Assembly: GCA_977016875.1 (NCBI GenBank)
Contig: CDRNST010000197.1
Span: 186,001-250,000, forward strand
Direction of reading: 5' to 3'
Length of the DNA stretch: 64,000 nucleotides
Source of the DNA: Pavona decussata
Lineage: Eukaryota
This document shows positions 1 to 29,874 of this stretch, in pieces. A program made the position numbers and the translations under genes. How positions within the stretch are numbered: position 1 is the stretch's first letter; every line of letters begins with the position of its first letter. Under the pieces are notes generated by a model that saw nothing but the letters and a program-made list of their open reading frames with translations, was not told where the DNA came from and did not search any database.

Positions 1-3000
1 AACGAGATGCAAGGAAAAGTGGAAGAAATCAGTTCCATGGTAAAAGAGGTAGTGGCAGTTCTAGCAGATCTAAAACCTTTCACCAAGAATTTCTCGCCTA
101 TCCTTGCAACAGCAGGGAAGTTACCTGACTGCCAGCAAATGAAGGAAATAATACTGGATAGCACACGGCCCTGTGTTTACAAAGCACTTAAGATTGGTAA
201 ATCCTTTATCGATCAGTATAAAGACTTAAAAAACGAAATAGAAGTCTTTCGTGGTTTGGTAGCCGACACTTGGAAGAACTTCGAGATCCAGAAATGCACC
301 AAAGGTGGAATTTGCATTTCAAAAGCGTTCATAGAACAGGGAAAGGTAGTTAAAAACAAAGTGGATTCTATCAAAGACAAACTTGAAGAAGCAACAGAGT
401 ACACCAACTTGCTTAAAACGTGTGGAAACGGTGTAGACAATATAATAGCAGTGGTAGACGTTGTAAAGCTTCTCATTGACCAAGTACGAAACTTTTCCAC
501 CAGTGACGATATTCAACGAGTGATAACCGTTTTGCAAACAATCACTGGACGAAATCCGACAGAACTCAAAACTAGACGTGAAAAAAGGCCCATCAAGGAC
601 GCAATAGACCGCATTAACAGAATCTCTGATTATATACAAAAAGCTAAGGAAATGAAGAACAAAATCGAGAACTTCCAAGAAAACACTTTTGAGGCGTTGC
701 AGAGTGTTTACGATGACGCCATACTCAGAAACGTGAAATCACTAAAGGTTGCACGTGTTAAGCTTCAGGTATCGTATAAACTGTGGCAACAGACGAGGAA
801 TGTAGACAATGTTCTAAATACTCTGGATTTAGGAACTAAAAAAGCGTTGGCATTTGCTGGGAAGTTAGAAGACGTGAGTTCTTTGTTCTCGAACCCAACA
901 GTCGACCTTCTTTCTCATACGGCTGAGCTGACTGACGTTGTCAAACCAAATCTCGACAAGTACAACTCAGAGGTCACGGAGGCTGTAGGCAAGGTGAATG
1001 GTTTTATAGACAAAATCAGTGATTTTCTCAATAAAATTCAGACAAGGCAAAGGGGCTTAGATCCAAGCGCTTACAAACCCTGGCAAAAGATATCTTACTG
1101 TTCGGAAGAAGTTTGCTTGCGATTTCTAAGAAGGTCATCATCCTTATATCTATCTACTATTTTCACATGGAAATTTCCTCATCTTGACGACCTATCGTCC
1201 ATGCGAAAAAGTGGCCGTTGGTTGACACCAGGCCTGTTTGATGACTATAAAGTGGAAGGAATATCTCAGTTCTCCAGTAACGAAATGGTTTTAGGAATGC
1301 ATGGCGTGGCAAGTAATCGAGGCAAAGCCTCTCTTCTTGTTATCACAAACTTTGATCAAGGAGTAAGAAAAATTATTCAACTCACCAAACAAGGTCGTCC
1401 TTTGTCAGTGAAAGTCGGTGGAGTCGCCATAGCTAAAAATTTTATCTGGATCAGCAACAGTAATACAAATAAAATTCTATCGGTAAGGAAATCTAGCATC
1501 AAGTCAACGTTTACGTCCCACAAACCTTCAAAGCTTGATATATCCAATGTTGTTTCTGTGGAAGGAACGGCGAGCTCTGTTTCTTATGATGAACCGACGA
1601 ACGTTTTATGGGTAACAAGCAACGCAAATGGGAAAGCTTATGGATATAAGCTGACAGGAACTGGTGATCTGGCGACTACTGGCTTAGCCCCAGATAGAGT
1701 AATTCACATCGGAGAAAACGCTCAGGGGATGGCAATAGTGAGACAATTCGGCAGTGAGTACGCATGTATTTCAAAGTGTGCATTGGTTGCTGGGTTTCAG
1801 TGCAAGATTGAGTTTCATGATCTGAGCAAAGGTGATGAAGTGGGAGACAAAACGCTAGCAAGGGTGGTCCGAACTCCGTCAGGGTTGGAGTCTGTCGCTA
1901 GAGTTGACAATGAAGTTATTGCCGTGGCGTTCTCTAGTGCCACGTTTGCTGAAAAGAAAAATGTAGAACTCGCAGCTGGTGATTATGAAGATCGATACTT
2001 TAAACTGAGGCTGCCAATACTTAACACTACCTTTGGAATAACCGAAAACTGTCTATACTTTAGACTACTCGGGAACTACGTCTTACGACCGAGGACGATT
2101 TTCCCCATTGGAGATGTAATATGTGGATCAAAACGCAAGCGAAACATCGCCCAAGAGCTTTTAGAAAGAGATGTCTATCATGAAAAACTAGAAGAAATCA
2201 TTGGAAGAGGCAAAAGGATTCGTCGGGACTTAACAGCTCCCGGAACTTGCATGAGTTTAACGAAAGGATCATTATTGCGCGGTGCTCATACTTTCTTTGA
2301 AGTGTCAACTACCATTCCAGTGTTTGGAATACCTGTCAGGCTATTTGCAGGAGCTAGAGGTCACTACAGTGTCGGTTACAAGGTAGGGCTGTGCATGAAG
2401 AGTAAAGTTTTTAAATTGGGTCTTATACCAGGGGCGTGGATAACGGCATACGCTGGAGCTAGCTTAGCTCTTTTTGTTGTTGAAGCTGGAGTAACAATTG
2501 AGGCCAGAATCCTCGAGACTTACCTTGTTCCAGAGTTACGCGTGGATATTGGCAAATGGCCCATACAAGCCTGTATCGAGCTAAGGCAACGGATGACGCC
2601 CCTCAGCATCAAAGTTTACCTCTGGTATAGGTTTTTTAAGATTAAAATCAGTAACGTCCGGGTTATTGGCATGGACATCAGCTTCACATTTGGTCCAAAG
2701 AAGACATTCAAAGAATGGTGGTGGTCGGCAAGGCAAATCGATAGAATACTTTTTACCAATTGCAAAATGAATGTAGACACAACGGCACCTGAAGCGGGAT
2801 CCTGCACGGCTCGACAGGTCGCAGACAAGAAATACTTCATTCAGTGGCATGGATTTACCGAAGACACCAAAATAAACGCATACCATGTCCGTATAGGATC
2901 TATTGAAGGTTCTGGTGATGACTACTCTACCTTGGTTGATACATCGCTCAGTCTTATTGTTAGAAATCTTGGAATAATGCATGGCAGAAGCGTTTTTGTA

Positions 3001-6000
3001 AGTGTCATGGCTACGAACGATGAAGGTTTGGAAAGTTCCTTAGTTTATTGCCCCGTGTTCGAAGCAAGGCGAAAGGGACCACAGATTCGTTATGTTTATG
3101 ATGGTACACCGGAAGGAAGGGACGCTGATTACCAACATGATGTGTATTCCCTGGGAATGAACTTTGCATTAAAGAGTGATTTCAGTGAAATTGCAGCTCT
3201 GAAATGGGGAGTTTCTTCACAGTCATCCTGTTTGTTTGATGAATCAGAATCCAACGTGGTAACTTTGACATCTCTCGGTGATTCGAACACAGTCCAGGTA
3301 TCTGGTTTAAGCCTTGAACACGGTAAAAGGTACTTTACTCGCTTGTATGCATTAAATTCATTTGGACTGAAAGCAGTTATGTGCAGTGATGGTATATTAA
3401 TTGACACAACTCCACCCATACCAGTAACTTTTCAAGACGGTGCTGGTGAAGCCGATGTTAAGTTCCTTTCGTCCGTAAGACGTGTTCGTGGAAAATTTAT
3501 TCCTTTTATTGATCCGGAGAGTCCTATAGTTAAGTATGAATGGAAGATTGTGAATAATGTGTCCGGTGAAGATGTTACTCCATTTGTTAGGGTACCCCTC
3601 ACCCAGAAGACACCCCTAATGGAAGGCCTCTCCCTTGAAGCTGGCTCTCCTTACAGGCTTGTCCTTCGTGGAACTAACGCAGCAGGACTTCAAGCAATTA
3701 TTGAGACAAATGGTTTTATACCGGATACCACCTCGCCGAATTGCACCGGGAATGTCATTGATGTGACTGATGAAACAGACACATCTGACGTAGATTTTGT
3801 GAGACATTTATCCAGTATTCAAGCAAAGTGGAAATGCTTTGATCGTGAAAGTGGTATCCATTCTCAGCTGGTGGGTGTAGGAACGTACCCTGGTGGTGAT
3901 GACATAAATGCATTAGAAAATTTCAGGTTTCTTTCGCACTCCTTAATGGAAAACGGAATGTATTACGTACGGTTTCTTAACACGAGCATTTTCCCAAGAG
4001 TAAGATACCATGTTACAATCAAAATCATCAATGGAGCGGGTCTAAAGAAAACAATCTATTCGGACGGCATTTTGATAGACACTACTCCACCTACCGTTGC
4101 GCCTGAGTACATTAAAGATGGCAAAGGGTTAAAAGACAAAAACTTCACCAGTGAACGGTTTGCTTTCAGTGCACACTGGGAACAAGCGTTCAGTGATACG
4201 GAAAGTGGTATAGCGAAATATTATGTCGGCCTTGGTACAAGACCTGGATTAACTGATATTGAAGAATTGAGCGCAGTGGGCTTACAAACAAATGTGACAG
4301 TGACTGGACTGCTCCTGGAAAGTGGCCAGCGTTACTACGCAACTGTTGTGGGTTGTAACAAAGTGGGAATGTGTATTAATGCAAGTAGCAACGGTGCCAC
4401 TGTTGACGCTGTACCTCCTCATTCCGGAAAAGTCATCACAGGATTTAAAGGTCCTCCCGTTTTGTTTCAGTGGATTACTAAATCTGTTTGGGCTAGGTGG
4501 AACTGGTGTTTTGCAGATGAAAAGAGGATTTCTGGCACTCTAAATATCAGCCAATGTAGCAATGACAGTTTCTATGATGTACACAGCGGAATTGACATGT
4601 TTGGCATATCGGTGTTGTCACCAAAATTAGAGCTTCTTGCCCCTTATAAGTTAGCTGGACGCCAACGACTTAGCGGCCGCAATGTAAATCTTCGAGATGG
4701 GGTCTATTCAGTCGTCATCGAAGCCAGAGACAAAGCAGGTGTTAAATCTCGTGGTTTTTCAAACACGTTTATCGTTGACACCACTCCTCCTTTCATAATA
4801 ACTGTACAGCATGGGCATTATGGTGAGACAATAGAGTACGTGAATACTCCGGTTATGACGTTCCGGTCCTTCTTCGCCGTCGAGGACGATCTTTCTATGG
4901 TTACAGCTTACAGAGTTGGCGTTGGTAGTTTTTCTGGAGCCGATGACGTTATCAAATTTGAGACTGTCTCCTTACGCCATCCCACACCATTTCTGCGTGC
5001 CAACTGGACATCTCTCAACTCCACATCTCTAAAAGATAACCGGCGTTATTTTATCACAATATTTGTCAGAAACAGCGCTGGCCTCTTCACCATTAAATCA
5101 TCCTCTCCTCTGGTTTCTGATTTTGAGGCTCCTAAAAATGGATTTGTAATGGATGGATGGGGCTTCAACGACGCTGAATATCAAAGCTTTTCATCTCTCT
5201 ACCGAGCACATTGGTATGGATTTACAGATTTCTCAGGAATCGAGACCGTTTACTTCGGGTTGTCCAGCAAACCTAATTCAACTGTATGTGATGTCATAAA
5301 GGAAGAGATCGTTTCGGGCAAGACCGACTTCCACGTCTTGTCCGGTCTAAACTTGACCTCTGGTACAAAATACTATGCTTGTCTCAAGCTGGTAGACAAG
5401 GCTGGGAATTCTGCAATGATTCAGTCCAACGGAGCAATGGTCGATACTAGTGCTCCACTCCCAGGATATGTTTTGGATGGTGGACCACACCAGCAAATAG
5501 ACATTCAGATTGAGAACTCAGTCCTTAGAGCTTCATGGTGCAATTTCACAGAACGCGAAACAAAAATTGTGTCATATCAACTGGCGTTTGGTTCTTTCCC
5601 AGGGGGCCAAGACATTCAAGAATTTACAGACGTGGGACTTGTCAATACAGCCAGGAGTTCGAAACTAAAGGTTCCAGAACTCACATCTGGTCATCGTTAT
5701 TATGCTTCTGTGATCGCCCTTAATGTACTTGGAATGCCAAGCTCTGTGGTCTCGTCAGACGGTGTGCTAGTGGATTTCACTCCCCCACGTTTCTCACAAC
5801 CAGTTCGTGATGGAAGTGATCATAGTAAAGAGCTAAGTTACACGGCGGAGAACTCTCTAAAGGCAACATGGATCTGCGAAGATCCAGAAACTAATATTTT
5901 GTCCATTGAAATCGCTTTTGGCTCACAGCCAGGGGAAGCAGATGTCCTTAATTACACGAGCCTATCAGTGACGCAAACATCGTTTATGATCAATCATAAG

Positions 6001-8236
6001 CTTCATCTCGGCTATCGATATTTTGGTATTGTTCGATGTACAAACAAACTTAACCTTACAGCTGCCATCTTCTCAGATGGTGTTGTGTATGATGATACGC
6101 CTCCTGATCCAGTTTATATCCAAGATGGAGACTATCAAGACTCAAATAGGACATTGGCGATGTCATTTAAGTTTGTTGATAAGGAAAGTGGTATTCAAAC
6201 ATACAGAGTTGAAGTGTGGGAAGAGGGTTCCTCGGGTCTGTACGGTTCTTTTGTTTTCTATGGTAATGCCACGAGGGTGAATTTACAGCTATCCAAAGAC
6301 CTGGTTAGCGGGAAAAGATATTATGTGAATGTGACAGCAGTAAACGGCGTCGGTTTGGGAATGACAGAACAATCAGATGGATTTATTGTCGATGCGTCTC
6401 CTCCAATATGCTCGCAAGTTTGGGATGGCAAAGGCGATTATCAAGATGACCAGGAATATGCATCAAGTTCAAGCAGATCCGTGATTTCCTGGGTATGCTA
6501 TGACAACGAATCACCTATAGTTCGGTATCGATTTTCAGTCAAGGACGTTCACACATTGGAGCACGCTATTCCATTTTACGCGTCAAAAAGGCGAGTTAAT
6601 TCCTCAGCGCCAGCAATCATTTCGGGAAGGGGTCGGATTAACCCACGATTTCTGGAAGGACATACTTACGCAGGTGGAATTGAGATAACCAACGCTGTCG
6701 GCATGAAAACCGTTTACTGGACAAATGGTGTTACGATTGACAGTACTCCTCCTCTAGTGACGAATCTAAAGATCACATTTTATCCACAAGAGGACTACTT
6801 GAAGGCTGATTGGTTAGTCAGTGACAAAGAGAGTGGCGTGAAGTCAATATTGTGGGGGCTTGGTACTACACCAGAAACAAACGATATAAAGAACTACACT
6901 GTCGTGTCACCGTTTAGTACAAATGTATCCACATCAAGTGTTTCCTTTCAACAGGGACTTACTTGCTTTTTAAATTTGATGGCTGTTAATAACGGCGATT
7001 TATCAACCAAAACGTCTTCACAGGCCGTCATTGTGGATCGCACAGCACCAAATTCCGGAGTCGTAGCTGCATATTATGCTTTTCCGCGTACCTATGATCG
7101 AAATATAAACCAGGTACCAAATTCAACTATTGTTGTGACTTGGACAGGATTTATAGATCAAGAAAGTGGCGTCAAAGAAACCAGCTGGGCTATTGGAATA
7201 GACCGTCAGCAGCTCCACCGAGGTGCGTCGGATGTGTATACTGTAGTGGACCCTGGCGAGTCCGTTGGTGGAGTCATCATAACGAATCTAACTCTTGTGG
7301 GCAATGAAACATATTTCGTTTGTGTGCGAGTTACAAATGGTGTCGGTCTTACAAGAACAGATTGCTCACCAGGAATGCTAGTTGTATTGGGTCAACTCTC
7401 TGCTGGTGTGGTGAGTGACGGGCCGATTACTTCATCGGATGACATTGACTTCCAACTTGACGACAAAGCACTTTGGGCGCATTGGAAAGGTTTTGACGAT
7501 CCAGTGTTTGGTATCTCAAGATATGAATGGTGCATCAGGGATCAGCTGCCCAATCCATCTGGATCAGACTTGTGTAAATGGTCTTTTATGGATATTGATC
7601 ATTTGAAAACTACAGCTAGCCGGTTTCACAATCTGACTCTATTGCATGGAACAAAATATTATGTGACAGTAAAGGCCGAAAACACCAGAGGTGACACCGT
7701 GATGTCGTCTTCGGATGGTGTGGTAGTTGATCGAACACCTCCAATTGGAAACGCAATCCGGATCGCACAATCATCGGGAAGAGAGACTGTGTTTCTAACT
7801 TCAGCTTCTGCTCCAGTAGTTACCTGGTCGATTGACGATACTGAGAGTGGAATCAGCCACTTTCTTGTTGGCGTCGGAAGCTTTCCATTTCAGGATGATC
7901 TATTAACTTTTCAACGCGTCGACAGTCTTAGCCGTTCCATTGACTTAGATCGTGTAAATTTGACGCTTTATGAAGGAATGTCATTCTACGTAACAGTCAC
8001 TGGCGTCAACATGCTTGGTCTAGAGACTACACTGGTATCCGCGCAGGCAGTGGTGGACTGGACGCCACCGGAGTTTGATAAAATCGTGGATGGTAACGTT
8101 ACCAAGCCGCTTACGCAGGGATTTATTGATAGCGATTACGAAAGGGACAAAGGAATGCTATTTTCTCACTGGCGTGGAATTCAAGATCCTGAAAGTGATG
8201 TTATAGAATACCACTGGTGTGTTGGAACATCACAGG
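1..8236 (+). CDS. Giant FN3-like-repeat surface protein, very large exon (5'-partial): helical/coiled region, predicted beta-propeller, beta-rich domain, repeats 1-17
   Basis: Frame is open from base 1 (aac gag atg). Donor CAGG|GTAAGC at 8236/8237, phase 1. Recurrent motif D-x-T-P-P...DG...W-x-x-F-x-D-x-ESGI...Y...G...YY-x-TV-x-A-x-N-x-AGL. Confidence 0.9.
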
Positions 8237-8697
8237 GTAAGCATTTGTTTAGGCTTGTTATTCTTTTTTTTTCGGGTTTCAACACTTAAACACTTAATAT
8301 TTACCGTAAATAAAGCTTTTTAATACTACTAGACCATATTCATGAACATCCAACTGACTTCCCAACAAGAGTTGTGTCCTTGGGCTGATCGAGTTTCATA
8401 TGCATGGACACTGGTTGGAAACCTGTCGAACCTATCACAGGGACTGGAATGTTTACTTTAACTACCAATTCTACATGTTTCTCTTCTATGAACATTATTT
8501 TTGCCACAAAAGAGCGAATTACGATAAATAAAGAAGCAAATTGTGTTTATTCTTTTGTCTCAATGTCAAGAAGGTTTAAAATGGACATTTTAAGGCAACG
8601 TTCTGTGTATTCGAGTAGATAATGTACTTCTACCACATGCTGGGATTTTGTAACTCATTCAATAGCAGAGGTGTTAAAAGGTTCGTTTTATTTTCAG

Positions 8698-10178
8698 GGG
8701 GTTGCCAGGTAAAAGAAATGACAGCTGCTGATCTGCAAACAAGTGTGTGGCACCCACTCGCTTCTCAAGACGGCTTGCAGTATTTCTTTACTGTCGAAGC
8801 AACAAATGGAGCCGGCCTTAAACAATCAGTCTCTTCTGACGATATAATAATCGATACTTCTCCACCTGTGATAAGTGATATTTACCACGGCGCTGAAAAA
8901 GCAGAGAAAAATGCGGCTCACGTGATGTCTCAAAGTGTTGGTGACCAGTTAGCATTCTGTTGGGATAAGCCGTATGACGACGAGAGTGGAATTTTGTCTG
9001 TTAAATGGTGCGCAGGTACCAGCAACAACTCCTGTGACATCATATCGTTGACGTCTGTAGATCCAGGAGATGATTGTGTGAGATATTTCATGTCTAAATC
9101 GCTGACGTCTGGTACGATTGTGTTCATAATGCTGCTAGTCACAAATGGCGCAGGAATAACATCTGAGGTCGTCACCTCACCCCTGTTAATTGATACCACA
9201 CCGCCATCAGAAGGAAACGTGAACATTGGAAATACGGTCAAACTCAAGTATTTCAGAAAGGGGGATTTAATTAAAGCCGAATGGCGTGGTTTCGCTGACA
9301 ATGAGAGTCGTTTGAGCCACTTCGAGTGGGCTATCTGTCAAGTCAGTGCGAAAGACATATGTATTAGCCCATATGTTAACGCTGGAGGTAAGACGACAGT
9401 GGAGATCGACACCTTGGGTCTAAGATATGGAGTTTCATATGCTGTCATTGTCCGAGCCTTTAATAAGGTTGGACTTTTTAGTGAAGCAGCTTCGAGTCAG
9501 TTTATTTTAGATGGTACGAAACCATCTGCTGGAACTATATACGATGGATTACAGGGACGAAAAGATATAGAATTTCAAAGCTCTACCACAGAAATGTCTG
9601 CAAACTGGTCGCCATTTACTGACAGGAATGGAGAGATAGCTGAGTACGAGATGTGTATAGGCATAGAAGTAAGAGCATGTGACGTAAGCGACTTTGTTAG
9701 TATTGGCATCAATCTTAAAGGAACAGTGTCAGGGTTAAGGCTGAAGCACAACGAAAAATTCTTTATTACCGTACGAGCAACAACCGAGTCCGGCTACAGC
9801 CAAACCGCAACATCTAATGGCGTCAGAGTTGATAGCACTCCAGCTGTAACAGGAGAAGTCAGAGACGGACAGACACTCGCGGACATCGACTACCAGGCAG
9901 ATGACACGTACATCTATGCCAACTGGGACAACTTTCAGGATGAAGAATCAGACGTCACCGAGTACACATGGTGTGCCGGCACAGGAAAAGGAATATGTGA
10001 CATTGTTCCAGAAACCAACGTTGGAGATCGCACTAGCGCTAAACAGCAGATTGAACCTGCACTTCCTGAAGGAATAGAAATCTTCGTTACTGTTACCACC
10101 TTTAACAATGCAGGCGCCTCTACCTCGTCTTCTTCAGATGGGTTCAAAGTGGATAAATCTGTTCCTATCCTCTCAAAG
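8698..10178 (+). CDS. Giant protein exon (FN3-like repeats)
   Basis: Acceptor ttttcag|GG completes phase 1. Donor AAG|GTAACT, phase 0. Same repeat motif. Confidence 0.9.
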
Positions 10179-10508: not shown

Positions 10509-11151
10509 GTCCTGGACTTGCAGCTGGGTTTGGGCGATTCTGATGTTGACTACCTCACCGCAAAGGAAGAGTATTGCGTTAGCTGGGATGCCATGGATGC
10601 TGAGAGTGGCATACTAACAAGCAATGTTTCTGTCTGCTCTGAATTGAACAAGAACGACTGCCCACTGCACAGCCTTGAAGTCGGCAACCAAACGTCTGTC
10701 TGCATGTCTGATATGGAATTTAAAGAAGGTATCCGGTATGTGACGAAGGTTAGCACTGAGAACAACGTTGGGCTATCCACAGAGTTCTTCTCAGATGGCT
10801 TTGTAATTGACACTACTCCACCTGTAATGGGTGAGGTTTTATACCCTGATAAGCCGAAGACAACCGACGAGGAGACTGCAGAAACATTCACACATTCTGA
10901 AATTATTGTCCAGTGGAATGGGTTCTGGGACAAAGAAAGCGGTATTCGGACCACTTATGTTTGTGTTGGTACTCAGCCAGGACAGTGTAACATCAAGAAC
11001 TTTACAGATGCGAGAAATTCCACTTCGTACACCTTTGGAGACTTACCGCTTGTTCAAGGAAAGACGTACTTTGTCTCTGTCCAGGCTGAAAACAGAGCTG
11101 GTCTCAGAAGTGATGTGAAGACATCTGATGCGATTGTTGTTGACAAGACAG
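10509..11151 (+). CDS. Giant protein exon (FN3-like repeats)
   Basis: Acceptor ttcaccag|GTC, phase 0. Donor ACAG|GTGCAC, phase 1. Confidence 0.88.
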
Positions 11152-11509: not shown

Positions 11510-12049
11510 GACCTATTAATGGAGGTGGAATACAAGCTGGAAGTGAGAGGGGTGGCGACATTGATGTTCAAGAAAGCCGAAGCCATATTGCAGCTTACTG
11601 GAATGCCTTTGAAGATCTGGAAAGTGACGTCATGAAAGTCACGTGGTGTGCGGGACTGTCTTCAGGTGATTGTGACCTCTTGAAAGAGACACAACTGACG
11701 CCAGATAGCACGTCTGTCCGTAAGGTCCTAACGCAGCCAATTAAGAATGGCCAGCAATACTATATCACCGTGACTGCAACAAATACTGCCGGCGTGACAA
11801 CTTCACTTACATCGAATGGCGTGACGGTTGACGATACTCCTCCAATTTCTGGTATCGTGATCGATGGAATTATCTCAGATGTGGATTACTTGAATGGCGA
11901 GGACGATATCAGTGCTAGCTGGTTTGGCTTTGAGGACTTAGAGTCCGGTATCGCGTCTTACGAAGTGGCCTTATGCGACACTAGGAACTTGTCATCCTGC
12001 CCGCAGCCCTTCGCTGGAGTTGGGAAAACAAAGAATGTCACTATCACAG
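11510..12049 (+). CDS. Giant protein exon (FN3-like repeats)
   Basis: Acceptor tggcag|GA. Donor ACAG|GTACAA, phase 1. The repeat continues across both junctions. Confidence 0.88.
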
Positions 12050-12085
12050 GTACAAATATCATTCGCGGCAGTTACCCCTGGCAAG

Positions 12086-18698: not shown

Positions 18699-18853
18699 GT
18701 TTGACGCGGCCCTCACTTGTCCAGAACCTTGGAGTCACGTGAACCGTTCGATTAAGTTGCTGACAGTTAACGTATGCCACCTGACTCAATTTGCGTTTTT
18801 CTGGTCTTTCATTGCAAAACACGGCTTGGTCCTGTTCGACAAGAATCATTCAA
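18699..18853 (+). CDS. Giant protein exon missed by the ORF track, encoding the GPS-like motif (W)FDAALTCPEPWSHVNRSIKLLTVNVCHLTQFAFFWSF
   Basis: Acceptor tcttttag|G completes TGG. Donor A|GTAAGT, phase 1. Frame is open throughout. Confidence 0.85.
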
Positions 18854-20706
18854 GTAAGTAATAAAGATTGTGCATTTCAGACCATTCCTCCCCGAAAAGC
18901 TGGAATACTGGAGCACCTTAAACTACAGCGACCACAACTTAAATTTCGTTTCCTCCCAAATTTGGACTAACTCCCTATCGTTTTATAAATCACGGCTTAA
19001 TGCAGTAGTGAAAGAAATTAAGCACTTGCTTCACAGTTCAAATTATAATTTACAAGCTACACTGCTTTCATCACTAAATACAAAATAAGGACAAATTATC
19101 TAGAGAACTACAAAGTACTCTCAGCTCTAAAACAATTTAGGAAAAAATGCTCCCCTGACCAAAATATCCCTCCCTTTAAAAAACTTGCCGAAAACCTCAT
19201 TTCATCAAAGAAAGTCGGCCAAAAAAATACCAATATATTGTCAGAAGAAAGGCATTCACGCCAGTGAAAAGTCAAGGAAAGTGACTTTCTGAAGATGTAA
19301 TTTCAAACGTATAAGTGAACTGCGAAAATGCTTACAAGCTTCTCTTCCTATGTACTGTGGAACAAAACTAAGAGTCTTTCAGTTTAAGTTTATTCATGAA
19401 ATGCAATCAAAGGGCAAGTGCATGGATACAGTGTGTTTGAAAAACCGCTAGACAAAACCGTAGCCACTGAAGATGTTTTTAAATCCGTTACACGAAACGC
19501 TACAATCAAATTCCAGTTGTTTTTACTCACTCGTGTTACAAAAAGTGAATTTGTTGTGCCCTTTTCTAAAAATGAGTATGGATTGTTCCATTTCATCATA
19601 AGTTTAAGGGTTGCTCTCCTACACTATAAATGTTATGACGCCTACCCCCGGGACAATTGCCCGGGCGATGTACACTGCAAGATCATGTTAGTCGTGTTTA
19701 TGAATATTCAAAATTGTCATTGTCTAGCCAAATGCTCTTCTGTGATAACTTATGTCTTCTTCGCTAGCCGAGCCTTACCTTTGTTCTGTCCATGGTCTTT
19801 CCTTTGTTTCAATGCCAACCATTTTGCATAATTAGCACGCGCCAATCCCTTAGCAGAAGAATACGTCTCTCGTTCTTTTGTCTTCGCAATTGTCTGGTCT
19901 CCCTTTCGTTGGTGGCCCTTAGCAATTGCTTCCTTTTGTCCCTTGCTTTGCGCAACTTTCTTTTTTCCTCTATTTAACTTTCGCGCGACTTTCATGGCAT
20001 GATCAATCACATTTTCGGAAGGACGCGCTTTCCTCTCGTTCCCTCTAAACAGTACCGTAATACAATTCCGCAATCGCGGTTCAGATGACTTGTATGTGTG
20101 CCCGCGCTTCCATACAGCGATACTCATTATCCAAATTCGAATAGGCAGCAGTTTATTACAAAACAATAGAAAACATTTGCTGGGAAAGCTTTGTTCCGGA
20201 AGTGAATGTACGACAAATAGATCTAAAGGATGGCAATTAGTTTGTGAGCTTTGTGCACGGGACATAGAGGAGTCCCATCTAACGGTATTGAGGCTAACAT
20301 TTTCTTCACCGTGCAATTGCAGCGAAATTCGCGCAAATCGATGTTGTTGATTCATTACAAAACAAAGTAAGTGGCCAAACAAAGCGTCACACGATCGACG
20401 ACGCGTACCTTTTATATGGGTATATATTTATATTTTTGATCGGCGTGATCAATTTGCGATGCAATCACACGGCACCTCTCATTAGACGGTACGTACATAA
20501 GCACCGGCATGCGGCAGGCTTATGTAGTTCGAATTTATTTTCGCCATCTTGTTATATGAGTAGTAATACGGTAATTTTGTGTCGAGTTACGATATTCAAA
20601 AATCACTGTCCAGATCGCAAAGAAAGAAGTGAGAATAACATGAGCCGTTCGTTCATTGTATGACATATTGAATGAGATAACAGACACCTTAGGGAACCAC
20701 AAAGAT

Positions 20707-21465
20707 TTAATCCCTGCGTGAAGTCGTAGTTGCAGTAGACTTCACTTGTGTCCCCTCATGTGCGCAGCAGGGATCTCCTTCTTCACCTCGCCCGACGTAC
20801 ATGTCGGCCACTCTGTGGCATTTGGGTAGGTAGGGATAGGCTGCGTTCAAAAATGACTTCTTAACTGAACTCCTTACAACACTAGTACGATCACTGCATC
20901 CACCTTTCTCTTCAAACGTCTGGTAGACTCTTTCCTCAGCTTCTACTTCAGAGATCTTAGCTCTTAGGCTGAATTGCTTTTGATCTTGTTTCAATTGTAA
21001 CTGCCTTCGTTTCAATTCTAAACCGTCATTCAAAACTTGTACACGAGCCATTAAAGCTGCCTTTCTAGCTGTGGCCTTGAACCTCGCACTGGATGCGGTA
21101 GTCGAAGAGGACTTCTTTGTACTCTGACTAGCTTGGCTAATGCTATCTTCTAGATCTACATTGTCTTCTAAGCAATCACTTGACAGGTCTAATGCACATG
21201 CCACACTCACGCGGTGCTCTGCCAATTTTAATACCTCGCTGCAATTGTACTCAGCTTCAACATAATGCGTTTGGGCCCGGGGAACCTCTTCCGATATACC
21301 AGCCCCCTCCAACAAGTCTATAAGTTTAACATTACAATAAAACAAATTTCCAAGAGCAGCCCTAACCTCTTTAATCCTTCTCCGGACACGATCGACACTC
21401 GCTCCCTTGTCTGAAAAAGCTGAAAAAATACGAAATGAAACAGCTCGCAAACCGGGCATAAACAA
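20707..21465 (-). mobile_element. Degenerate BEL/Pao-type LTR retrotransposon gag N-terminal remnant
   Basis: DSISQAS...SSSTTASSARFKATARKAALMAR followed by a coiled-coil, a pattern typical of BEL/Pao gag N-termini. No pol region present. Confidence 0.5.
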
Positions 21466-22446
21466 ATACAGAAATACTTACAACCGGCTGAAATAAGCGG
21501 TAAAAATGTAAACTCACATATATTTGGGCATCCTGCCGCCTGTCTCTCCAAATCGAGTCATAAAAAGCGAACAAACTACGCTACATAGCAAAGGTACAAA
21601 CTGCCCGAAGCACATGGTCTCACAAAAAAACATCGCGTGACCCACACAAGGGAGGTACGGAAGGGCGCATGACAACAAACTGTCCCTAAGACAGTAAGGC
21701 AGACTGAAACGCATTTATTCTTTTTGTACTTTTTTTCTTTCTTTATGTAATTAGATTTTATTGATCTTAGTATTTTTGCAGTTTTGTAATCTGCAGTTAT
21801 TGTAATTGTTAGCTATCATTTGGCCTTTTTTACTGCATTGTCATTGTATTATTTTGTGGTGTTGTAAAGTATTACATTGTAAATAAAAAACACACAGCAT
21901 TGTAAAAAAATACAGATTATGCTACAATTGACGGATTTAGTATGATCTTCTTACTTAGTAAAGTTATCAAATCGGCGAAGTGTCCCATCACCTCGCAGCC
22001 TTTCACGGGGTTTGTGTACCCTAAGATGGCATGCCACTTCTTATCAGAGTTAACCTAACATTTTGCTCGATTTTCCTAACTGTTCGCTGGGACAAATTCG
22101 TAGACCTGAGAAGAAATAGGAATTGTGAAAAACGTTTCTTGTCAAAGAAAACCACTCGGCATGCCGCCTCCCCCTCGAAGCAATACTAGTCGAAAAAAGT
22201 CTGTTTATCTTCCGATATATGTTAACTTCTCATCGAACAGATAATTGCCTGTATTTTCCATATCAGAACGCCTTGAAATTGTAAAAATTTCTTTTTTTTT
22301 TTTTTTTAATACTCAACTTTATTTCAATTCTACGTCATGTTAACATTCCTTTCATTTAAGTATTTTTTTTTTACATTTATATTTGATGAGTGATAACACA
22401 TATGTATATATGCAAAGTAAAACAAACGTACAAACAGTATTATATA

Positions 22447-22709
22447 CAGCTGTTTCGACAAAGGTTGTCGAAAAAAAGCACAAAAGCGTACGCAACAATG
22501 CCAAAAGGTAATCCGGGAAATACCCCGGCAATAAATTTCAAGAAAAGCTCAGAATCCATAATGCTTCGACCGTACAGCGAAGACTTGAGATGGCGGGCAA
22601 TATGGATTCTGGGCTTTTCTTGAAATTTATTGGGTATTTCACAGACTACCGTTCGGCATTGTCGCGTACGCTTTGACGCTTTTTTGGACAACCTTTGTGG
22701 AAACAGCTG
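22447..22709. mobile_element. Palindromic MITE, TA target-site duplication (Tc1/mariner-type)
   Basis: TA|CAGCTGTTTCgACAAAGGTTGTC ... GACAACCTTTGTgGAAACAGCTG|TA. Internal arms aataaatttcaagaaaagctcagaatccata / tatggattctgggcttttcttgaaatttatt. Confidence 0.85.
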
Positions 22710-22744
22710 TATACAGCCGAGGAAAATTAAAAGATTACAATTTA

Positions 22745-22905
22745 NNNNNNNNNNNNNNNNNNNNNNNNNNNNNNNNNNNNNNNNNNNNNNNNNNNNNNNN
22801 NNNNNNNNNNNNNNNNNNNNNNNNNNNNNNNNNNNNNNNNNNNNNNNNNNNNNNNNNNNNNNNNNNNNNNNNNNNNNNNNNNNNNNNNNNNNNNNNNNNN
22901 NNNNN
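22745..22905. other. Assembly gap (N run)
   Basis: 161 N bases. Confidence 1.
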
Positions 22906-22919
22906 CATCATGCTAACTA

Positions 22920-23440
22920 ATTCTGTTAAAAATTAAAAATCGTATAAAAGTTATTCTAAAGGACTAATCGAGATATGCTCTTTTAAAAAGGAGAGTCTTA
23001 AGTTTCCGTTTAAAAATGTTAAGACTGTGTTCCTTCCTGAGTTCTAGAGGTAGTCCATTCCACAATCGAGGAGCCGCAGTAGCGAAGGCTCGGTCCCCGA
23101 GGGTGGGCAGCGTTTTAACTGCCAGTGGTTTGAGCGTATAGTTATCATTGGATCTCAAACCATAACTGGAGTTCGGCTTCAATGTGATTAAGTCCCGTAT
23201 ATATTTTGGGGCGGTGCCATGGAGAGCTTTATATGTGATTAAAATTATTTTGAAATAAATTCTATGTTTAATATTTAGCCAATGAAGTTCAGTTAATAAT
23301 GGGGTGATATGACAGTATCTAGGAGCTCTAAAAATTAGTCTTGCCGCTGAATTCTGTAGGCGTTGTAGTTTATAAACAAGGCTGTTTGGTAGCCCATACA
23401 ACAGAGAATTGCAATAATCCAAGCGACTAGTGACGAATGC
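22920..23440 (-). mobile_element. CR1/L2-group LINE, 5'-truncated 3' fragment
   Basis: DYCNSLLYGLP...LQRLQNSAARLI...HITPLL..LHWL...GDRAF..AAPRLWNGLP, the C-terminal RT-associated region of L2/CR1 ORF2. Confidence 0.85.
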
Positions 23441-23517
23441 TTCTACGGAAGGCTACTTAGACGCAAAAAAACCTAATAGCTACAATTACGATTGCTTGTA
23501 CTTCAATTAGAGCATTG

Positions 23518-26500
23518 ATCAACTACCTATAACACTGATTAACTTTTTCCATTTTTTTAAATGATAAGTTAATTTATCTCTTTTCCTGGCAATATGGAGC
23601 TCAATAGAATAAACTCTCTTCGTTTTGGCAATGAACCCCTTTTAAGGAAGGCTTGGCGTTTTGGCATTTCCGAGAATAAATATAGTATTTACCCAACAAG
23701 AGAATATGATTGATTACAGGAAAAGAGTAGGTGCTCGATGGATTCGTCCTCTTTTTGGCAGAAAGTACATAGCGGTGATTGCGTAATGCCAAACTGAAAG
23801 AGCTTTTCATTTGTAAAAACAATTCGATTTAGAACTTTGTACTGAAATTCTCTTGATTTAGAGTCCATGGACGAGCAGAAGGATAAAGAATAGACCTTCT
23901 CCCAATCGACAGCAGAGTGTGGGTATTTGTCAGACAATTTCTTTTGAGCAGTAGGCACTTCCTGCTTCTTCCCTGGAACTGGCGATAAATTTGTTTAGAA
24001 GAGACATCAAAAATTTTTAAAGAACTCCCATCAACAGTGATGGTGGGAACATCTGGAACTGGAAAAACTATTGGTAGAAATGAAGCTTCTTTTATTATCG
24101 TGCGCCAATGAACTGGGATGGAGTCAATGATACTCATCACAAAAAAACGTTGCTCAGGATTGAGCAGTAGATTCGTAAAGCTAAATGCTGTACCGTTACC
24201 CGAGATTAAATCCCCTAATTTTAAGAGGCCAATGGTAAAAAGATCCCTTCTAAAAAACGATTTTTTGTCAACACAAAGAAACTTATTGTTCCATACAATT
24301 TGATTCGCAACCTCTTGAAACGAAAGTGGTGTATTGTTGTTCATATCAGACCAGGAATCGAAGCACTTTTCATAGAAGGGCGGCAATGTTACTCTTAACT
24401 TGGTAGTATCGAAATTGCAATGAAGTACAAATTTACCACCCACAGATAACAGACGTTCATCGAGGAAGAACTTCCAAGGACTAGGATAATCTTCCAAATA
24501 TTTCTTTAAACAGGAAACACGTTTTGTACAAATCATTGAGTCAATATCGAGCATGTTTAAGCCACCACTCTCAATGGTGGAGGTGAGAACATTTCTTTTA
24601 ACTTTATCTTTGCCATTCCAGATGAAATTGAAGAAAATGGAATTCGCATTTTTTATAAGTTCTTTAGAAATAGGTATTGCTGATGCCCTGAACATAAATT
24701 TGGGAATCGCGAAGGTTTTAACTATCTGTATCCTCCCTAAAAGTGACAAGCCTCTCCATTTCCATAGATTTAAAGATTTCTTTATCGCCTTTAAAGTTTC
24801 CCTAAAATTTAAGTCGTCCCTTTCTTTATCGTTACCACCGAAATAGATTCCCAGAATTTTTATAACATTGCGAAGGTTGTGCATGTTAGATAAATCTTCC
24901 CATATAGAACTGTCACCAAAGGCTAAGGCTTCTGTCTTCTCATGATTGACTTTCAACCCCGAGCACTCCCCAAAGTCGTCGAGGAGGCGAAATAGGCTGG
25001 TATAAGACCTTTTGTCTTTCAGAAAACATGTCATATCGTCAGCGAATAAGTTGAGCTTTACATTAACTTCACCAATTTTAAAGCCTTGAATGGAATCGTC
25101 GTTTCTTATCCTAATCGCCAAGACCTCTAATGCGATTATAAAAAGATAAGGAGAGAGAGGGTCACCTTGTCTTACCCCTCTTCCTAATGAGAAAGGCCCT
25201 GTTGAAAAACCATTGTTCATCACACAACTTGAGGCATTTTTATACAGCACGCGTATCCACTGGATAAAACTAGGTCCTAAATTAAATTCGTGTAATATTC
25301 TTATTAAATAATTGAAATTAAGAGTGTCAAAAGCTTTCTCAAAGTCAACGGCTACTAAAATTCCAGACAAGCCTTTCTGTTTAGTATGCTCTATTACATC
25401 TTCTATCGTTCTGATCGCATCGAAAATCGTTCTTCCTTTGACAAACGCATTCTGATTGTAGTGAATAATTTCAGGAAGAGTCTTTTCCAAACGTTTTGCT
25501 AGAGCTTTTGACGCTATTTTCGCATCCACATTTATAAGAGATATTGGACGCCAGTTCTTTATCAATCTTTTATCCTTCCCTTTCTTTTCAATTAAGGTTA
25601 TAATAGCCTGTTTCTGTGAATTAGAAAGTTCTCCATACTCAAATGCATGATTTAAACTATCGACTAGCAATGCTCCAATAAGAGGCCAAAAGGCAATATA
25701 GAACTCTACAGTTAAACCGTCATTTCCTGGAGATTTATTCTTTTGGAAAGACCTCAACACATTATAGCACTCTCCATATCCTAGTTTTCCTTCGCAAATA
25801 TTTCTCAGATTTTCAGGCAATTTTGGAATTTGATTTGATTTGCTAATAAATGTAGATATGGCATCCGAGTTTGCACAACTATTTCCATCATAAAGACTCG
25901 AGTAATAAGACTCTAATTCATTCATAATTTTTTGGGGGTCGTGTGTCAATGATCCCTCACTTGTAAAAACTTTTCTTACGCTGGTTTTCTTTTTATTAGA
26001 ATTTTCAAGATTGAGAAAGTATTTATTGTTCCTCTCACCCATTTCGTACCAAGTCGCACGAGAGCGTATGATAGCTCCCTGTGTAATAAAGTCGTACAAG
26101 TTCTCATATTCTGCTTCTAGAGATTCCAGTTCCTCAAAATTTTGAGGAGGGGTCCTTGTCACATTTATGAGAGCATTCTTTTATACATTCCTCAACCTCT
26201 TGCAATTTTGCTTTTCTTTCGCGAGCTTTACTTTTACTATACTCAATAGTACACTGACGTATTCTATATTTAACTAAATCCCACAGAACTCGTTTATCCA
26301 AAACCTCCTTAAATTCCTCTAACCAAACATTATAATTTGCGCTAATTAGTTGACAGTAATCTGAATCGGTATCAATGTCCACTTGCAGACAATCGCTGAC
26401 CAGCCAGTAATCTAGACGTCTTTGGATAATTGGTGTTTTTTGGCGCCATGTAAGCCTTGTATCGGTAGGATTGCGAATGCGCCAAATATCTATTAAGTCG

Positions 26501-27045
26501 TGTTCTACACACATTTCTTCGACAAATTTAGCAGACTCTTTCCTCTTCTTGTTCCCTCCCCGCCCGTCTAAAACCTCGTCAAGAGTTACGTTAAAAACGC
26601 CTCCGACAATGAGATATGAATCACATTCTGCTGTCAAAGACTTAATTTCTTCTGAAATATTTTGAAAATATTGAATTTGCTCGCTGCACTTATTTGGAGC
26701 GTAAATATTCAGAAGACAATAACGCGAATCCTGTATAATTGCGTCCAACGTAATGAAACGGCCTTCAGGGTCTGTCTTAATTGTTTGCAAATTAAAATCC
26801 AAATTGTTCTTTACAAGCACCAAAACTCCTTTGTTATGGCATGTTCCATGAGAAAAAAACAAATCACCCCTCCACTGTTTCTTCCAAATATTTTCCACGT
26901 CACGAGTACTATAAGTTTCCTGCAAGAAACAAATTTCCGCGCCAGATTTACTGAGCCAATTGAATATGGCTTTCCGCTTTTCAAAGGTACGAATCCCTCG
27001 AACATTTAAGGACAATAATTTAAAATTAACATTGCTAGGCCCCAT
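23518..27045 (-). pseudogene. L1/Tx1 ORF2 (EN-RT-zinc knuckle), frameshifted
   Basis: Split across track ORFs 26134..27066, 23829..26162, 23689..23958 and 23601..23822. The end of the EN domain appears deleted (DIDT/DSDY junction). Confidence 0.88.
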
Positions 27046-27486
27046 GTGACTGAGAGAAAAAGACAATAGTACAATGGAAAAAGCTGAACAAAAAAAAAAC
27101 AGTTTTGTTTAAAAAATACTAATGAAGTAACAATGACAACTAAGAATTGAGGATGTAAATCAGATTTTGACACGTCCAAATAGCCATCAGCGAAAACAAG
27201 AGAAAAAAACGCAAACAGAAACAATATACGTAAACAATTGCACAAGGAAACAAAATTTAAATTTAAATTTAAGAGGGCAACAAAGAAAAATATCCCGAGT
27301 GCTGCCCTTGAGAGTGGAACTCGTATCGAATAAGAAAGCCTGACCAGTCTTGGCCGCTTAATCAGCTAGGCCGGTAAAGGCTCCACTGCACCTTATTATA
27401 GTATTATAATAGAGTAGACTGAAACGCAGCTTATCTAAAGAATAATTCTAAATAGCATAATATTCAAACAATAAACAGTTCAAAGT

Positions 27487-28376
27487 TTATGAAACAACCT
27501 TTCCGTTAATTATTAGCTTGTCGGGTTCTGATTTACTAAAGGATACCCTTAGCCCTTTCTCCTTGGCTTCTTTGAGCTTTGGCATCTTCTTGCGCCTCTT
27601 CTCGATTATTATTTGTGGAAAATCTTGAAGTATCATATATTCAGTGTCTTTTAGTTCGAAGCCTTGGCTGAGAATTCTTTCTCGATCTTGGAACCGCAAA
27701 AAGCGTGCAAGAATTGGCCTGGGTTTACCATTGATGGACTTACCGACCCGGTGTACGCGCTGGATCTCTATAGTGTTACTTGGGTCATGGAAGCCGAGCG
27801 CCGTTTCCAAAAAATGGTTTAGGACCGTCCTTGTGTCAAGGGCTTCACCGCCTTCTACAGCGTTGACTTCTTTCTCTGGAATGCCAAAGAACTTCAGGTT
27901 TTCACGCCGACTGTACGATTCAAGATAGAGATGCTTCATGTGTAGCTCGTTGATCTGCTTTTCCTTTTCCGTGAGTTTACCTCGCAGCGCGGATACTTCG
28001 TCATTTAAATTAGTGAGCCCAGCGTCCATTGTGTCGATCTTCGAATCCATCTTGCGTGTCTCACTTTCCAATTTCTCCACAGTCGTTTCTGTCCTGGCAA
28101 GTCTAGAAGAAATGTCCCTCAAGATAGATCAATGGCATCCAGTTTCTCTCGTTTCTTTAGAGTCATATCCAGTACTGGTTTAATGTCCTGGTTATCCGGT
28201 GTGTTTGTCATATCGCGAACCGTTTCTTCTTCGATCTCAGCGACTTCAATTTCACACCTTCCGAGGTCGCTTTTCTTAGTTTTGGAACGTTTATCTTTCG
28301 GTGAACTCGATTCTGTGGAACTCGTACTACTTCTCTCGGATCTAGTGCGCTTTGATGATATATTTGTCTTTTCCAT
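27487..28376 (-). pseudogene. L1/Tx1 ORF1 RNA-binding protein, one frameshift near 28125
   Basis: Track ORFs 28119..28523 (from MEKTN) and 27487..28122 join into a basic N-terminus, coiled-coil, RRM and CTD. Confidence 0.8.
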
Positions 28377-28550
28377 TAAAAGGCTACGCTCAAAAATTAA
28401 AAAAAGGCCGCGTCGGGGCGGAGCCTTGCAAGACACGACTATTTGGCAGCCATGCTCGTTCCATGCTCGTTTCTCTACGTTACATTGCTGTTGAATTATA
28501 TTGCCAATGATTATGGTGTTCACTCATAACTTATTTTTCCTTTCTGATAG

Positions 28551-28996
28551 TGTACGATTCAGATGGGGACATCAGAGTAAAGCGGGGACAAAAAGTTACT
28601 AAACTGGAAATTACCGTTCGCCGATCCAAAGGTTCCCAAGGTGACATCACAGTGCATTGGTCTCTGTATCACACTGATGACTCGTCAGAGAGCGCTGATC
28701 TTATATGGCCATCATCTGGGACAGTGTCCATGACTGACGGCCAGTGGAGTGAATCGTTCATTGTAAATGTCGCCAACAACAGAAAGGAAGTGCCCGAAAG
28801 CGTGGTCTTTGTGCAACTCGAAGATGCCACGGGTGGGGCTTTGTTAGCTTCCAGGGACGAGACAACCGCAATGATCGTGATTGCTTCGAACATGAGGAAC
28901 GACCATGGTGCGTTGATTATCACTGAGGTCAGCGTTTGTGATTGCACTACTAACAGTTTCCGTTGTCGTGAATGCACAAAGAAGGAAAAGAAGACG
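28551..28996 (+). CDS. Giant protein exon: Calx-beta domain plus transmembrane helix (frameshift at ~28917-28935)
   Basis: Acceptor tttctgatag|TG matches phase 1. Calx-beta signature TVRRSKGSQGDITVHW...SGTVSMTDGQ...F-x-V-x-V...VFVQL-x-DATGGALL...TAMIVI. The +1 frame reads AFVIALLTVSVVVNAQRRKRRR. Donor CG|GTAAGT. Confidence 0.8.
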
Positions 28997-29438
28997 GTAA
29001 GTATCGGGTATTTAAGATTTGCAAAACCATATAAACTTACACCGAACACGCTAAGATAAGAACAGAAACATGAAGAGTGTATCATCCAATCAATGGCTCA
29101 TAACTTTTCAAAGTTTCCGGAAGAAATTCATGCATCCTTGTCCATTTTCCCATCTGAATTTTAGTTTCACCAAAAACTTTTTGTCAATCTATAAGATAGG
29201 TGTGGGCCTAAGCAGAGTACCACGGGCAAAACAGATACCGTCATTCTTCATTTATCGTCATGTGGCATCAGATGACGGCCTTGCCACAATGCAGTGAGCA
29301 TTGGTAAAAATTACTAGACCCTTTGCTTACGTCATCGTCAAAGAAAGAACGCCTCAGTTTAACTTGCATTGCGTGCTATCTTGTACAATACTGGTTATTG
29401 CATTAGAAAAAGACTCAGTTTTCATTGTCTGTTTTCAG

Positions 29439-29488
29439 AGTTATCAGGCAGAAACAGGCACCAAACCAAGAATTTGAGATGTCACCTC
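29439..29488 (+). CDS. Giant protein cytoplasmic-tail exon (RVIRQKQAPNQEFEMSP)
   Basis: Acceptor gttttcag|A, donor C|GTAAGT. Open in the TM (+1) frame; the unshifted frame hits TGA. Confidence 0.65.
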
Positions 29489-29812
29489 GTAAGTAGAGAT
29501 GTTCTTCAACTTGTATTGCAAAAAAGCAATCTGCCGCCTTTTTAATGTGAGCAAAGTGTTAAAATTTATAATCAACGCTAAGGTTTTCTATCTCTCTCTC
29601 AGTTTCTGTTATAATATTTAATTGTCATGCGTCCTAGTGTGATCGATATCGGATGAGTAAACTTCCTCAGCAAAAACGCAGGAAATATTTTGCATGAAGT
29701 CTCCTCCTATTGCCTTAGTGTCGTATGCAGAATTGCTTCCAAGTAAGAGAATTTATGTGCTCAAGATTTGACTAACCCACTCCCCGTTTTGTTTTTTAGT
29801 TCTTTCTCATAG

Positions 29813-29874
29813 GACTGGAACTGGTCATGAGGCTGCACGATCCTGAAGACCCTGAAAACAATGCTTTTGACTAA
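29813..29874 (+). CDS. Probable terminal coding exon (...LELVMRLHDPEDPENNAFD*)
   Basis: Pyrimidine tract then catag|GA, phase 1 compatible. An alternative acceptor at 29799 and a possible extra exon at ~29671-29742 cannot be excluded. Confidence 0.4.

Follow-up and report, generated by a model that had tools for sequence, protein, structure and literature searches.

The DNA analyzed here is a stretch of 64,000 nucleotides from the coral Pavona decussata (contig CDRNST010000197.1, positions 186,001 to 250,000, or G000:C197:186001-250000 in our numbering), hereafter called the window. Its first 29,874 positions contain the greater part of a single giant gene on the plus strand, which encodes a cell-surface protein of about 6,700 residues. 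Twelve coding exons of this one gene were identified within window positions 1-29874, with a total length of 15,877 nt or about 5,292 codons, in agreement with an earlier note on this DNA that had proposed one giant gene of more than 5,200 amino acids. The exon boundaries were examined with a junction test, in which all GT and GC donors and all AG acceptors were scored for frame, absence of stops and fit to the orthologs. In these homology-guided tests, every intron was found to be bounded by a canonical GT..AG pair with compatible phases. The scripts joined just the codons flanking each intron, and modules that span exons were examined in the public ortholog proteins. Frame 1 of the plus strand is open from 1 to 8286 and is followed by further open stretches in changing frames up to 18853, while the segment 19750-28523 contains open reading frames (ORFs) on the minus strand only. 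The coding exons in the window are:

1-8236, plus strand: the 3' two thirds of the giant exon E2, from the last part of the helical region through the propeller and the beta-hairpin domain to FN3 units 1-17a
8698-10178, plus strand: E3, second half of FN3 unit 17 and units 18-21
10509-11151, plus strand: E4, FN3 units 22-23
11510-12049, plus strand: E5, FN3 unit 24 plus the initial part of unit 25
12406-12595, plus strand: E6, last part of FN3 unit 25 and beginning of unit 26
13243-16594, plus strand: E7, remainder of unit 26, units 27 and 28 (the latter degenerate), an insert of about 615 amino acids, unit 29 and start of unit 30
16843-17346, plus strand: E8, remainder of FN3 unit 30 and, from about 17110 onward, the first third of the ZU5-like domain
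17943-18160, plus strand: E9, middle of the ZU5-like domain
18699-18853, plus strand: E10, last part of the ZU5-like domain, including the GPS-type motif
28551-28996, plus strand: E11, Calx-beta domain to about 28890, then the transmembrane (TM) helix region
29439-29488, plus strand: E12, start of the cytoplasmic tail, placed from RNA joints
29813-29874, plus strand: E13, putative last coding exon, placed by sequence and phase alone

The acceptor of E7 at 13243 was picked by its fit to the orthologs, and the whole exon is present in the proteins from Montipora, Oculina, Nematostella and Dendronephthya. The tail exons were not recovered by homology search, the tails being too divergent, and the acceptor of E13 is uncertain and without read support for this allele, with an alternative at 29800 that would end at 29846.

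The gene starts 41.5 kb to the left of the window. Frame 1 stays free of stops upstream of base 1 for 1,277 further codons, and the giant exon E2 extends from G000:C197:182196, which is 1,268 codons to the left of the window, to window position 8236, where it is directly followed by a GTAAGC donor. This exon of about 4,014 codons is a 100% match to the database ORF P0001 and a 59-87% match to coral ORFs of about 4,030 amino acids. A further exon was located at about C197:161625-161870, and the first coding exon, found at C197:144484-144690, supplies a Met and a typical signal peptide and has a GTAAGT donor, so that the upstream exons and the signal peptide missing from the earlier note have been recovered. 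The gene as a whole runs from C197:144484 to window position 29874 and covers about 71.4 kb, with 14 coding exons and about 6,700 codons. Six full-length proteins, three of them from Oculina and one each from Montipora, Nematostella (EDO42273, LOC5514171) and Dendronephthya, map colinearly over every exon, and a partial protein from Acropora digitifera is likewise colinear with the window exons. These six full-length anthozoan orthologs have 6,300-6,900 amino acids.

By homology, the family is conserved in the Anthozoa, where it is present in corals, sea anemones and soft corals. The lengths of the orthologs range from 6,319 to 6,916 residues, shorter or partial models were found in Acropora digitifera and Actinia, and counterparts of the giant exon of about 4,000 codons are present in many coral assemblies. 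The orthologs are named uncharacterized, hypothetical or predicted protein, and no full-length ortholog carries a name that refers to a function. Outside the Cnidaria, named proteins were matched by the FN3 or Calx-beta parts only. Literature searches with the ortholog accessions retrieved no paper, and topic searches retrieved general papers on large lipid transfer proteins (LLTPs) and on GAIN and ZU5 domains, none of them on this family; the searches covered the articles and not their supplements.

The earlier description of the architecture applies to the C-terminal four fifths of the protein, but it missed the N-terminal 2,200 residues or so, which comprise the signal peptide, the LLTP head, the helical region, the propeller and the hairpin domain, and which change the likely purpose of the protein. 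Behind the signal peptide, profile matches place the head in the LLTP type, to which vitellogenin, apoB and MTP belong. The Pfam profile Vitellogenin_N (PF01347, cut-off 24 bits) scored 56 bits in Desmophyllum, 47.6 bits in Nematostella and 57.5 bits in Dendronephthya, where the match spans profile positions 3-527 of 590. The window gene's E2 alone reached 21.7 bits (positions 350-544); this exon holds only the helical half of the domain. The head is followed by a basic cluster and then by about 1,000 apolipoprotein-like helical residues. In Paramuricea clavata, two homologs of the head and the helical region (P0066, P0069) are named "DNA double-strand break repair Rad50 ATPase, partial," apparently a misnaming that stems from the long helical region.

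The segment after the helices was modeled with AlphaFold2 (AF2) for window residues 366-942 (model mc0c76b9f1cc3, 46 sequences), with a predicted local distance difference test score (pLDDT) of 70. The features from this segment to the end of E2 are:

1180-2031, plus strand: 5-bladed beta-propeller, model residues 29-312, block pLDDT mostly 74-93 through residue 280
2125-2226, plus strand: low-confidence linker (pLDDT <50) with two conserved dibasic clusters, RKR and KRxRR, seen in alignment A3
2251-2760, plus strand: long beta-hairpin domain (model residues 386-555, pLDDT about 80-88), its strands 22-30 residues in length
2815-8236, plus strand: FN3 units 1-16 and the first half of unit 17, from the repeat model described below

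The propeller matches the bacterial glutaminyl cyclase 3mbr over 209 aligned residues (Z 19.2, root-mean-square deviation (rmsd) 2.5). In alignment A3, R347 is invariant and K348, R349, R374 and R377 are present at 90% or more, which makes the dibasic clusters candidate sites for proprotein convertases. No known fold covered the hairpin domain in the structure searches, including a shape search of the ESM Atlas that saw only the propeller. Likewise, a profile search of PDB sequences with the propeller and hairpin alignment A3 gave nothing meaningful, and a feature search of the ESM Atlas with window amino acids 351-940 gave no usable match. Foldseek matches to the whole propeller and hairpin model include the microsomal triglyceride transfer protein at low coverage, and a strongly hydrophobic stretch was observed in the hairpin domain (Kyte-Doolittle value about 2.1 in the Nematostella ortholog).

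The stalk that follows is made up of FN3 repeats. A repeat hidden Markov model built from the window's own repeats, with a 112-residue consensus and DTTPP boundaries, gave 33 matches at E <0.01. These merge into 30 FN3 units, of which 29 are clear and one is degenerate, close to the approximately 31 repeats counted previously. Three units are split by introns, and a fourth crosses the intron between E7 and E8. The Pfam fn3 profile scored 56.6 bits on E2, and a profile of 23 units compared with the PDB retrieved the FN3 domains of titin (6e-21), Dscam (7e-9), contactins and fibronectin. The stalk is interrupted by a single segment:

14294-16138, plus strand: unassigned insert of about 615 amino acids in E7

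This insert had no match in Pfam. It is kept in all full-length ortholog proteins mapped and is skipped by the RefSeq model of A. digitifera. Weak leads to an FG-GAP-like propeller and to an ephrin-receptor-like, cysteine-rich module (ESM Atlas Ephrin_rec_like 0.76) were also observed for the insert.

The approximately 190 residues after FN3 unit 30 end in ...VCHLTQFAFF... and contain a conserved motif:

18775-18792, plus strand: codons for C-H-L-T-Q-F, with a predicted scissile bond between L (18781-18783) and T (18784-18786)

Across 25 aligned sequences with 27-87% identity to the first, the residues C, H, L and T never vary, and conservation of Q and F is at 90% or more. Upstream of the motif, one further Cys and one Trp are invariant in the same 25 sequences. 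The invariant cysteines are C164 and C183 only, which corresponds to one pair and not to the two disulfides found in GAIN domains. In an AF2 model, H-L-T is located at the turn between the last two strands, which cover residues 177-184 and 187-194. When model residues 1-195 were compared with 48,161 PDB chains, the best fold matches were the ZU5 domains of ankyrin (3ud1 and 3f59, Z 10.8, rmsd 3.0-3.1, 130-139 residues aligned; 6m3q, Z 10.1), and the GAIN domains of CD97, BAI3, CELSR1, GPR126 and GPR97 came next (Z 7.3-8.8). In GAIN domains, a subdomain A of six alpha-helices precedes the beta-sandwich (PMC3321182). This helical subdomain is absent here: the domain directly follows FN3 unit 30, and the model has four short helices of 4-10 residues. 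Furthermore, about 130 residues of the Calx-beta region follow the domain, which is not placed immediately before the membrane helix. By its topology the domain is extracellular, being located on the outer side of the single TM helix and behind the signal peptide.

Judged by the model, the domain belongs to the ZU5/GAIN-B autoproteolytic fold class, and we have not filed it as a GAIN domain. According to Liao et al. (2014), cited in PMC11697300 and PMC9539791, GAIN, ZU5/FIIND and Nup98 share a single autoproteolytic fold of ancient origin, which uses sites of the form H-(L/F)-(T/S). The earlier note had spoken of an autoproteolytic ZU5/GAIN-like domain, which is upheld for the fold class and for the HL|T motif, but the domain is not a full GAIN, as it has no subdomain A and one Cys pair and does not adjoin the membrane. 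The invariant motif and its position at the last hairpin suggest that the domain cleaves its own chain between Leu and Thr. Pfam scans of single window exons were empty for the ZU5-like, Calx-beta and insert regions, and these modules were therefore studied through ortholog proteins, alignments and folds; a profile search of PDB sequences with alignment A1 of the ZU5-like and Calx-beta regions gave nothing meaningful. The same ZU5-like module with CHLTQF was also seen in anonymous metagenomic proteins of 4,800-7,900 residues (entries L013 and L014; proteins P0134, P0136, P0109-P0113, P0251 and P0247), where PKD, REJ or TSP1 domains come after it and a single TM helix is found late in the chain.

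A Calx-beta domain had been placed between the GPS-type site and the membrane in the earlier note, and this is borne out by the fold and, less clearly, by the sequence. The approximately 110 residues after the cleavage domain match the Calx-beta fold with Z 12.9-13.8 to the CBDs of NCX1, CBD1 of CALX and integrin beta4, and in Foldseek with E 2e-8 and a TM-score of 0.74-0.82 normalized to the target. They are 28-37% identical to many ADGRV1 repeats, and an exhaustive phmmer search retrieved 1,076 proteins, mostly with multiple Calx-beta domains.

The exons for the ZU5-like domain and for the Calx-beta domain are separated by a long intron in which the assembly is interrupted:

18854-28550, plus strand: intron 10, 9.7 kb, with an assembly gap (run of N) at 22745-22905
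22964-28523, minus strand: long interspersed nuclear element (LINE, a non-LTR retrotransposon, LTR standing for long terminal repeat) in intron 10, with Pfam matches to RVT_1 (E 1.6e-37) and Exo_endo_phos (E 5.4e-8)

The LINE, which carries endonuclease and reverse transcriptase ORFs, occupies much of the intron and abuts the gap. We considered the possibility that the Calx-beta, TM and tail exons to the right of the gap belong to another gene and were joined to E10 by a scaffolding artifact, as could be suspected from a gap of estimated length and a LINE between E10 and E11. However, nine orthologous proteins pass from the CHLTQF exon directly into the Calx-beta exon without a missing residue; in Oculina P0103, for example, residue 6362 ends E10 and residue 6363 starts E11. 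The phases of E10 and E11 match, and an RNA contig from run X5 that aligns from 28553 has 19 loose letters in front, 16 of which are the last 16 bases of E10. The continuous ortholog proteins, the matching phases and the spliced RNA contig show that the flanks of the gap belong together, and we reject the two-gene explanation, which retains next to no probability and is excluded for practical purposes. The gap leaves the reading frame untouched, and the uncertainty is limited to the length of the intron. Retroelement ORFs of reverse-transcriptase-like and integrase-like types were also observed in the 20-kb intron that separates the giant exon from the second coding exon (C197:176058-179714 and C197:171746-175998). 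Downstream of the gene, the depth of DNA contigs is increased 5- to 40-fold at 30530-30930, 31730-32330 and 34130-34330, indicating dispersed repeats.

In every ortholog, a single strong hydrophobic segment follows the Calx-beta domain, succeeded by a tail of 40-230 residues, and NPxY/F motifs are present in eight of the ten ortholog tails. The family thus ends in one hydrophobic segment without a seven-transmembrane (7TM) body, as the earlier note had stated. Its claim of a single TM helix with a tail is correct for the family but not for this copy, in which the helix is out of frame:

28929-28996, plus strand: remnant of the TM helix and basic stop-transfer stretch, in frame 3 only; the upstream part of E11 is in frame 2, and the break is near 28938-28940

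The total length of the exons in the window equals 1 mod 3. As actually read, the sequence runs into a stop at 29475-29477, 36 codons after the shift, and the junctions downstream of the shift are in phase only with frame 3, the ancestral frame. The DNA contigs of two samples from one study (X1 and X3) are identical to the window over 28801-29975, and the frameshift is real in this DNA. The contigs of X5 are about 96% identical and have 11 extra bases at about 28938, which bring the helix into frame, as well as a further indel of 4 codons just upstream of this difference. They show the joint between E10 and E11 and the joints between E11 and E12 (28995/28971 to 29454/29459), and the exon that follows E12 in these transcripts was found neither in the window nor in the genome at up to 3 mismatches. 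The frameshift may be a variant within the species label, and this copy would give rise to a product that ends 36 codons past the shift without an anchor, or to no product.

The sole paralog in the genome is located on the minus strand of contig C125 and is 69-73% identical. It has an open giant exon of 4,035 codons, and its Calx-beta domain and TM helix are in one frame (L008, C125:278777-282063; C125:296980-303079). The window copy could then be a decaying duplicate with a broken 3' end, with the function of the family in this coral carried by the paralog on C125. The frameshift in the TM helix, the stop 36 codons later and their confirmation in the DNA contigs of two samples are in line with such a scenario, as are the intact frame of the paralog and the tail of the window copy, which is short, contains no NPxY and is not recognizably similar to the tails of the orthologs. 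On the other side, the approximately 6,600 codons upstream are free of stops and frameshifts, and any loss must be very recent. In other samples under this species label, the contigs of about 96% identity are spliced and carry an in-frame TM helix, which argues for a within-species variant and not for a dead locus, and a secreted form could still act. We consider decay of the window copy a minority explanation, to be kept in mind but rather unlikely.

The protein combines features of several known systems. With the GAIN/GPS proteins (ADGRV1, latrophilin and CD97, and the polycystin-1/REJ proteins) it shares H-L-T at a turn before the last strand, a Trp and a Cys pair ahead of it, a sandwich like subdomain B (Z 7.3-8.8) and a giant adhesion-type ectodomain, and ADGRV1 also combines a GPS with Calx-beta. 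It differs from these in the lack of subdomain A, in the single Cys pair and in the size of the domain (about 190 versus about 320 residues), and Calx-beta and one TM helix come after the domain, where the GAIN/GPS proteins pass directly into 7 or 11 helices. An adhesion G protein-coupled receptor (GPCR), or an ortholog of ADGRV1, was rejected as an identification: there is one TM segment and no 7TM, and the ADGRV1 matches cover just the Calx-beta part, 15-31% of the query. The ZU5 domains (ankyrin, UNC5 and PIDD, and the FIIND of NLRP1 and CARD8) provide the best fold match (Z 10.1-10.8) and are of the same size, and at the corresponding last hairpin those members that cut themselves have H-F-S or S-F-S. 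However, ZU5 domains as known so far are located in the cytoplasm, often with UPA and death domains after them, whereas the coral domain is extracellular, has H-L-T and is not recognized by Pfam ZU5.

At the other end, the LLTPs (vitellogenin, apoB/apolipophorin and MTP) resemble the coral protein in having Vitellogenin_N, with barrel and helical part, behind a signal peptide, followed by dibasic sites and amphipathic helical and beta regions. The known LLTPs are secreted or lumenal and soluble, whereas the coral protein would be tethered via 30 FN3 units to a TM helix; neither DUF1943 nor VWD was found in it. Usherin (USH2A) is similar in its size of more than 5,000 residues, its long FN3 stalk, single TM helix and short tail, but it has laminin-type N-terminal, EGF and LamG domains and is without an LLTP head, a ZU5/GPS-like domain or Calx-beta. 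Pfam scans of the window exons and of the N-terminal 2,400 residues of the orthologs gave no laminin N-terminal, laminin EGF or LamG domain. The SEA mucins are self-cleaved, non-covalently held single-pass tethers that can be released by force, features that the coral protein is predicted to share, and FRAS1 has Calx-beta domains close to a single TM helix. The SEA cleavage fold and motif (G|SVVV) are nevertheless unlike those of the coral protein, and the CSPG repeats of FRAS1/FREM are absent. With their defining domains missing, Usherin and FRAS1 were also rejected as orthologs.

Our interpretation is that the gene encodes a type-I surface protein of a family in which the following modules are arranged from the N- to the C-terminus: a signal peptide, an LLTP head, about 1,000 apolipoprotein-like helical residues, a 5-bladed propeller, dibasic sites, the long-hairpin domain, 30 FN3 units with one insert of about 600 amino acids, a ZU5/GAIN-B-type sandwich with CHL|TQF, one Calx-beta domain, one TM helix and a tail with NPxY/F in most orthologs. 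We hypothesize that the ZU5-like domain cleaves itself at the bond between Leu and Thr, while the last beta-strand stays docked. An ectodomain of about 6,400 residues would then be held non-covalently on a stub consisting of the last strand, the Calx-beta domain, the TM helix and the tail, from which it could be pulled free, much like in proteins with GAIN or SEA domains. The working end is probably the lipoprotein-like head, a candidate for the binding of lipid or of a lipoprotein receptor at a distance of more than 100 nm from the membrane, and the NPxY motifs may be used in uptake or in the binding of adaptors. The earlier suggestion of a sheddable tether that might respond to Ca2+ or force is likewise hypothetical. 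Taken together, the gene, its architecture and the self-cleaving tether form the account that we hold to be probable, by a modest degree, as a whole.

Several observations weigh against this account. The model of the cleavage domain was built from 25 sequences and has a pLDDT of 79.8, and Pfam GPS, GAIN and ZU5 gave no match in the window exons or in the orthologs at E up to 1 or 10. The ZU5 domain of ankyrin and some GAIN domains, such as that of BAI3, do not cut, and cleavage in the coral domain is predicted from motif evidence that is comparative. Pfam Calx-beta scored 12.8 bits in the orthologs against a cut-off of 27 and did not match the window exon, and in the acidic site aligned to CALX CBD1 the D-D-D reads D-N-E, with the following acidic residues partly kept. 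Matches of the helical region to the models of apolipoprotein A1/A4/E and apoLp-III were all below the cut-offs, and the suggestion that the head binds lipid comes solely from its family membership. The record of run X5 gives RNA only as a guess, though the joints seen in this run are spliced. Finally, the window contains an allele without an in-frame anchor, which may do nothing.

One main alternative is that CHLTQF has a structural role only, with an uncut ZU5-like domain in an adhesion or matrix receptor whose chain stays covalently continuous. In its favor, the ankyrin ZU5 domains that match best in structure lack autoproteolysis, there is one conserved Cys pair compared with the two disulfides that fix the kinked loop in GAIN, and the GPS and ZU5 profiles of Pfam were silent. 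Yet the invariance of C, H, L and T and the near invariance of Q and F, in 25 sequences that are otherwise as little as 27% and at most 87% identical, are hard to explain by packing alone. Moreover, H-L-T is the exact catalytic triplet of the cleaving GAIN domains and sits at the last hairpin. We therefore favor the self-cleaving tether and regard an uncut receptor as unlikely, although by no means negligible.

A more far-reaching hypothesis is that the protein represents a non-GPCR counterpart of the principle used by the adhesion GPCRs. In such a protein, the self-cut ZU5-type domain would release the ectodomain in response to force on the stalk of more than 100 nm or to Ca2+ at the Calx-beta domain, and the exposed stub would signal or be internalized via its NPxY tail. 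We consider this improbable on present evidence and put it forward as a speculation. If it were true, the capture of lipids or particles far from the surface would be coupled to an intracellular response, and the metagenomic proteins with the same cleavage module before PKD/REJ would mark an old, overlooked class of self-cleaving surface proteins.

To our knowledge, most of the juxtamembrane domains known to cleave themselves belong to adhesion GPCRs, polycystins and SEA mucins, and ZU5 domains are known only from inside the cell. An extracellular domain of ZU5 size with a GPS-type site, one domain away from a single TM helix, would widen the known settings of this ancient cleavage module and would offer a simple system for force-dependent release without a 7TM body. 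Likewise, the lipid-transfer proteins of the vitellogenin/apoB family are, as far as we know, soluble carriers. A membrane-tethered LLTP on a very long stalk suggests an unstudied form of lipid or particle handling at the cnidarian cell surface, with a possible bearing on feeding, yolk supply or symbiosis, and the ortholog LOC5514171 in Nematostella makes this idea testable.

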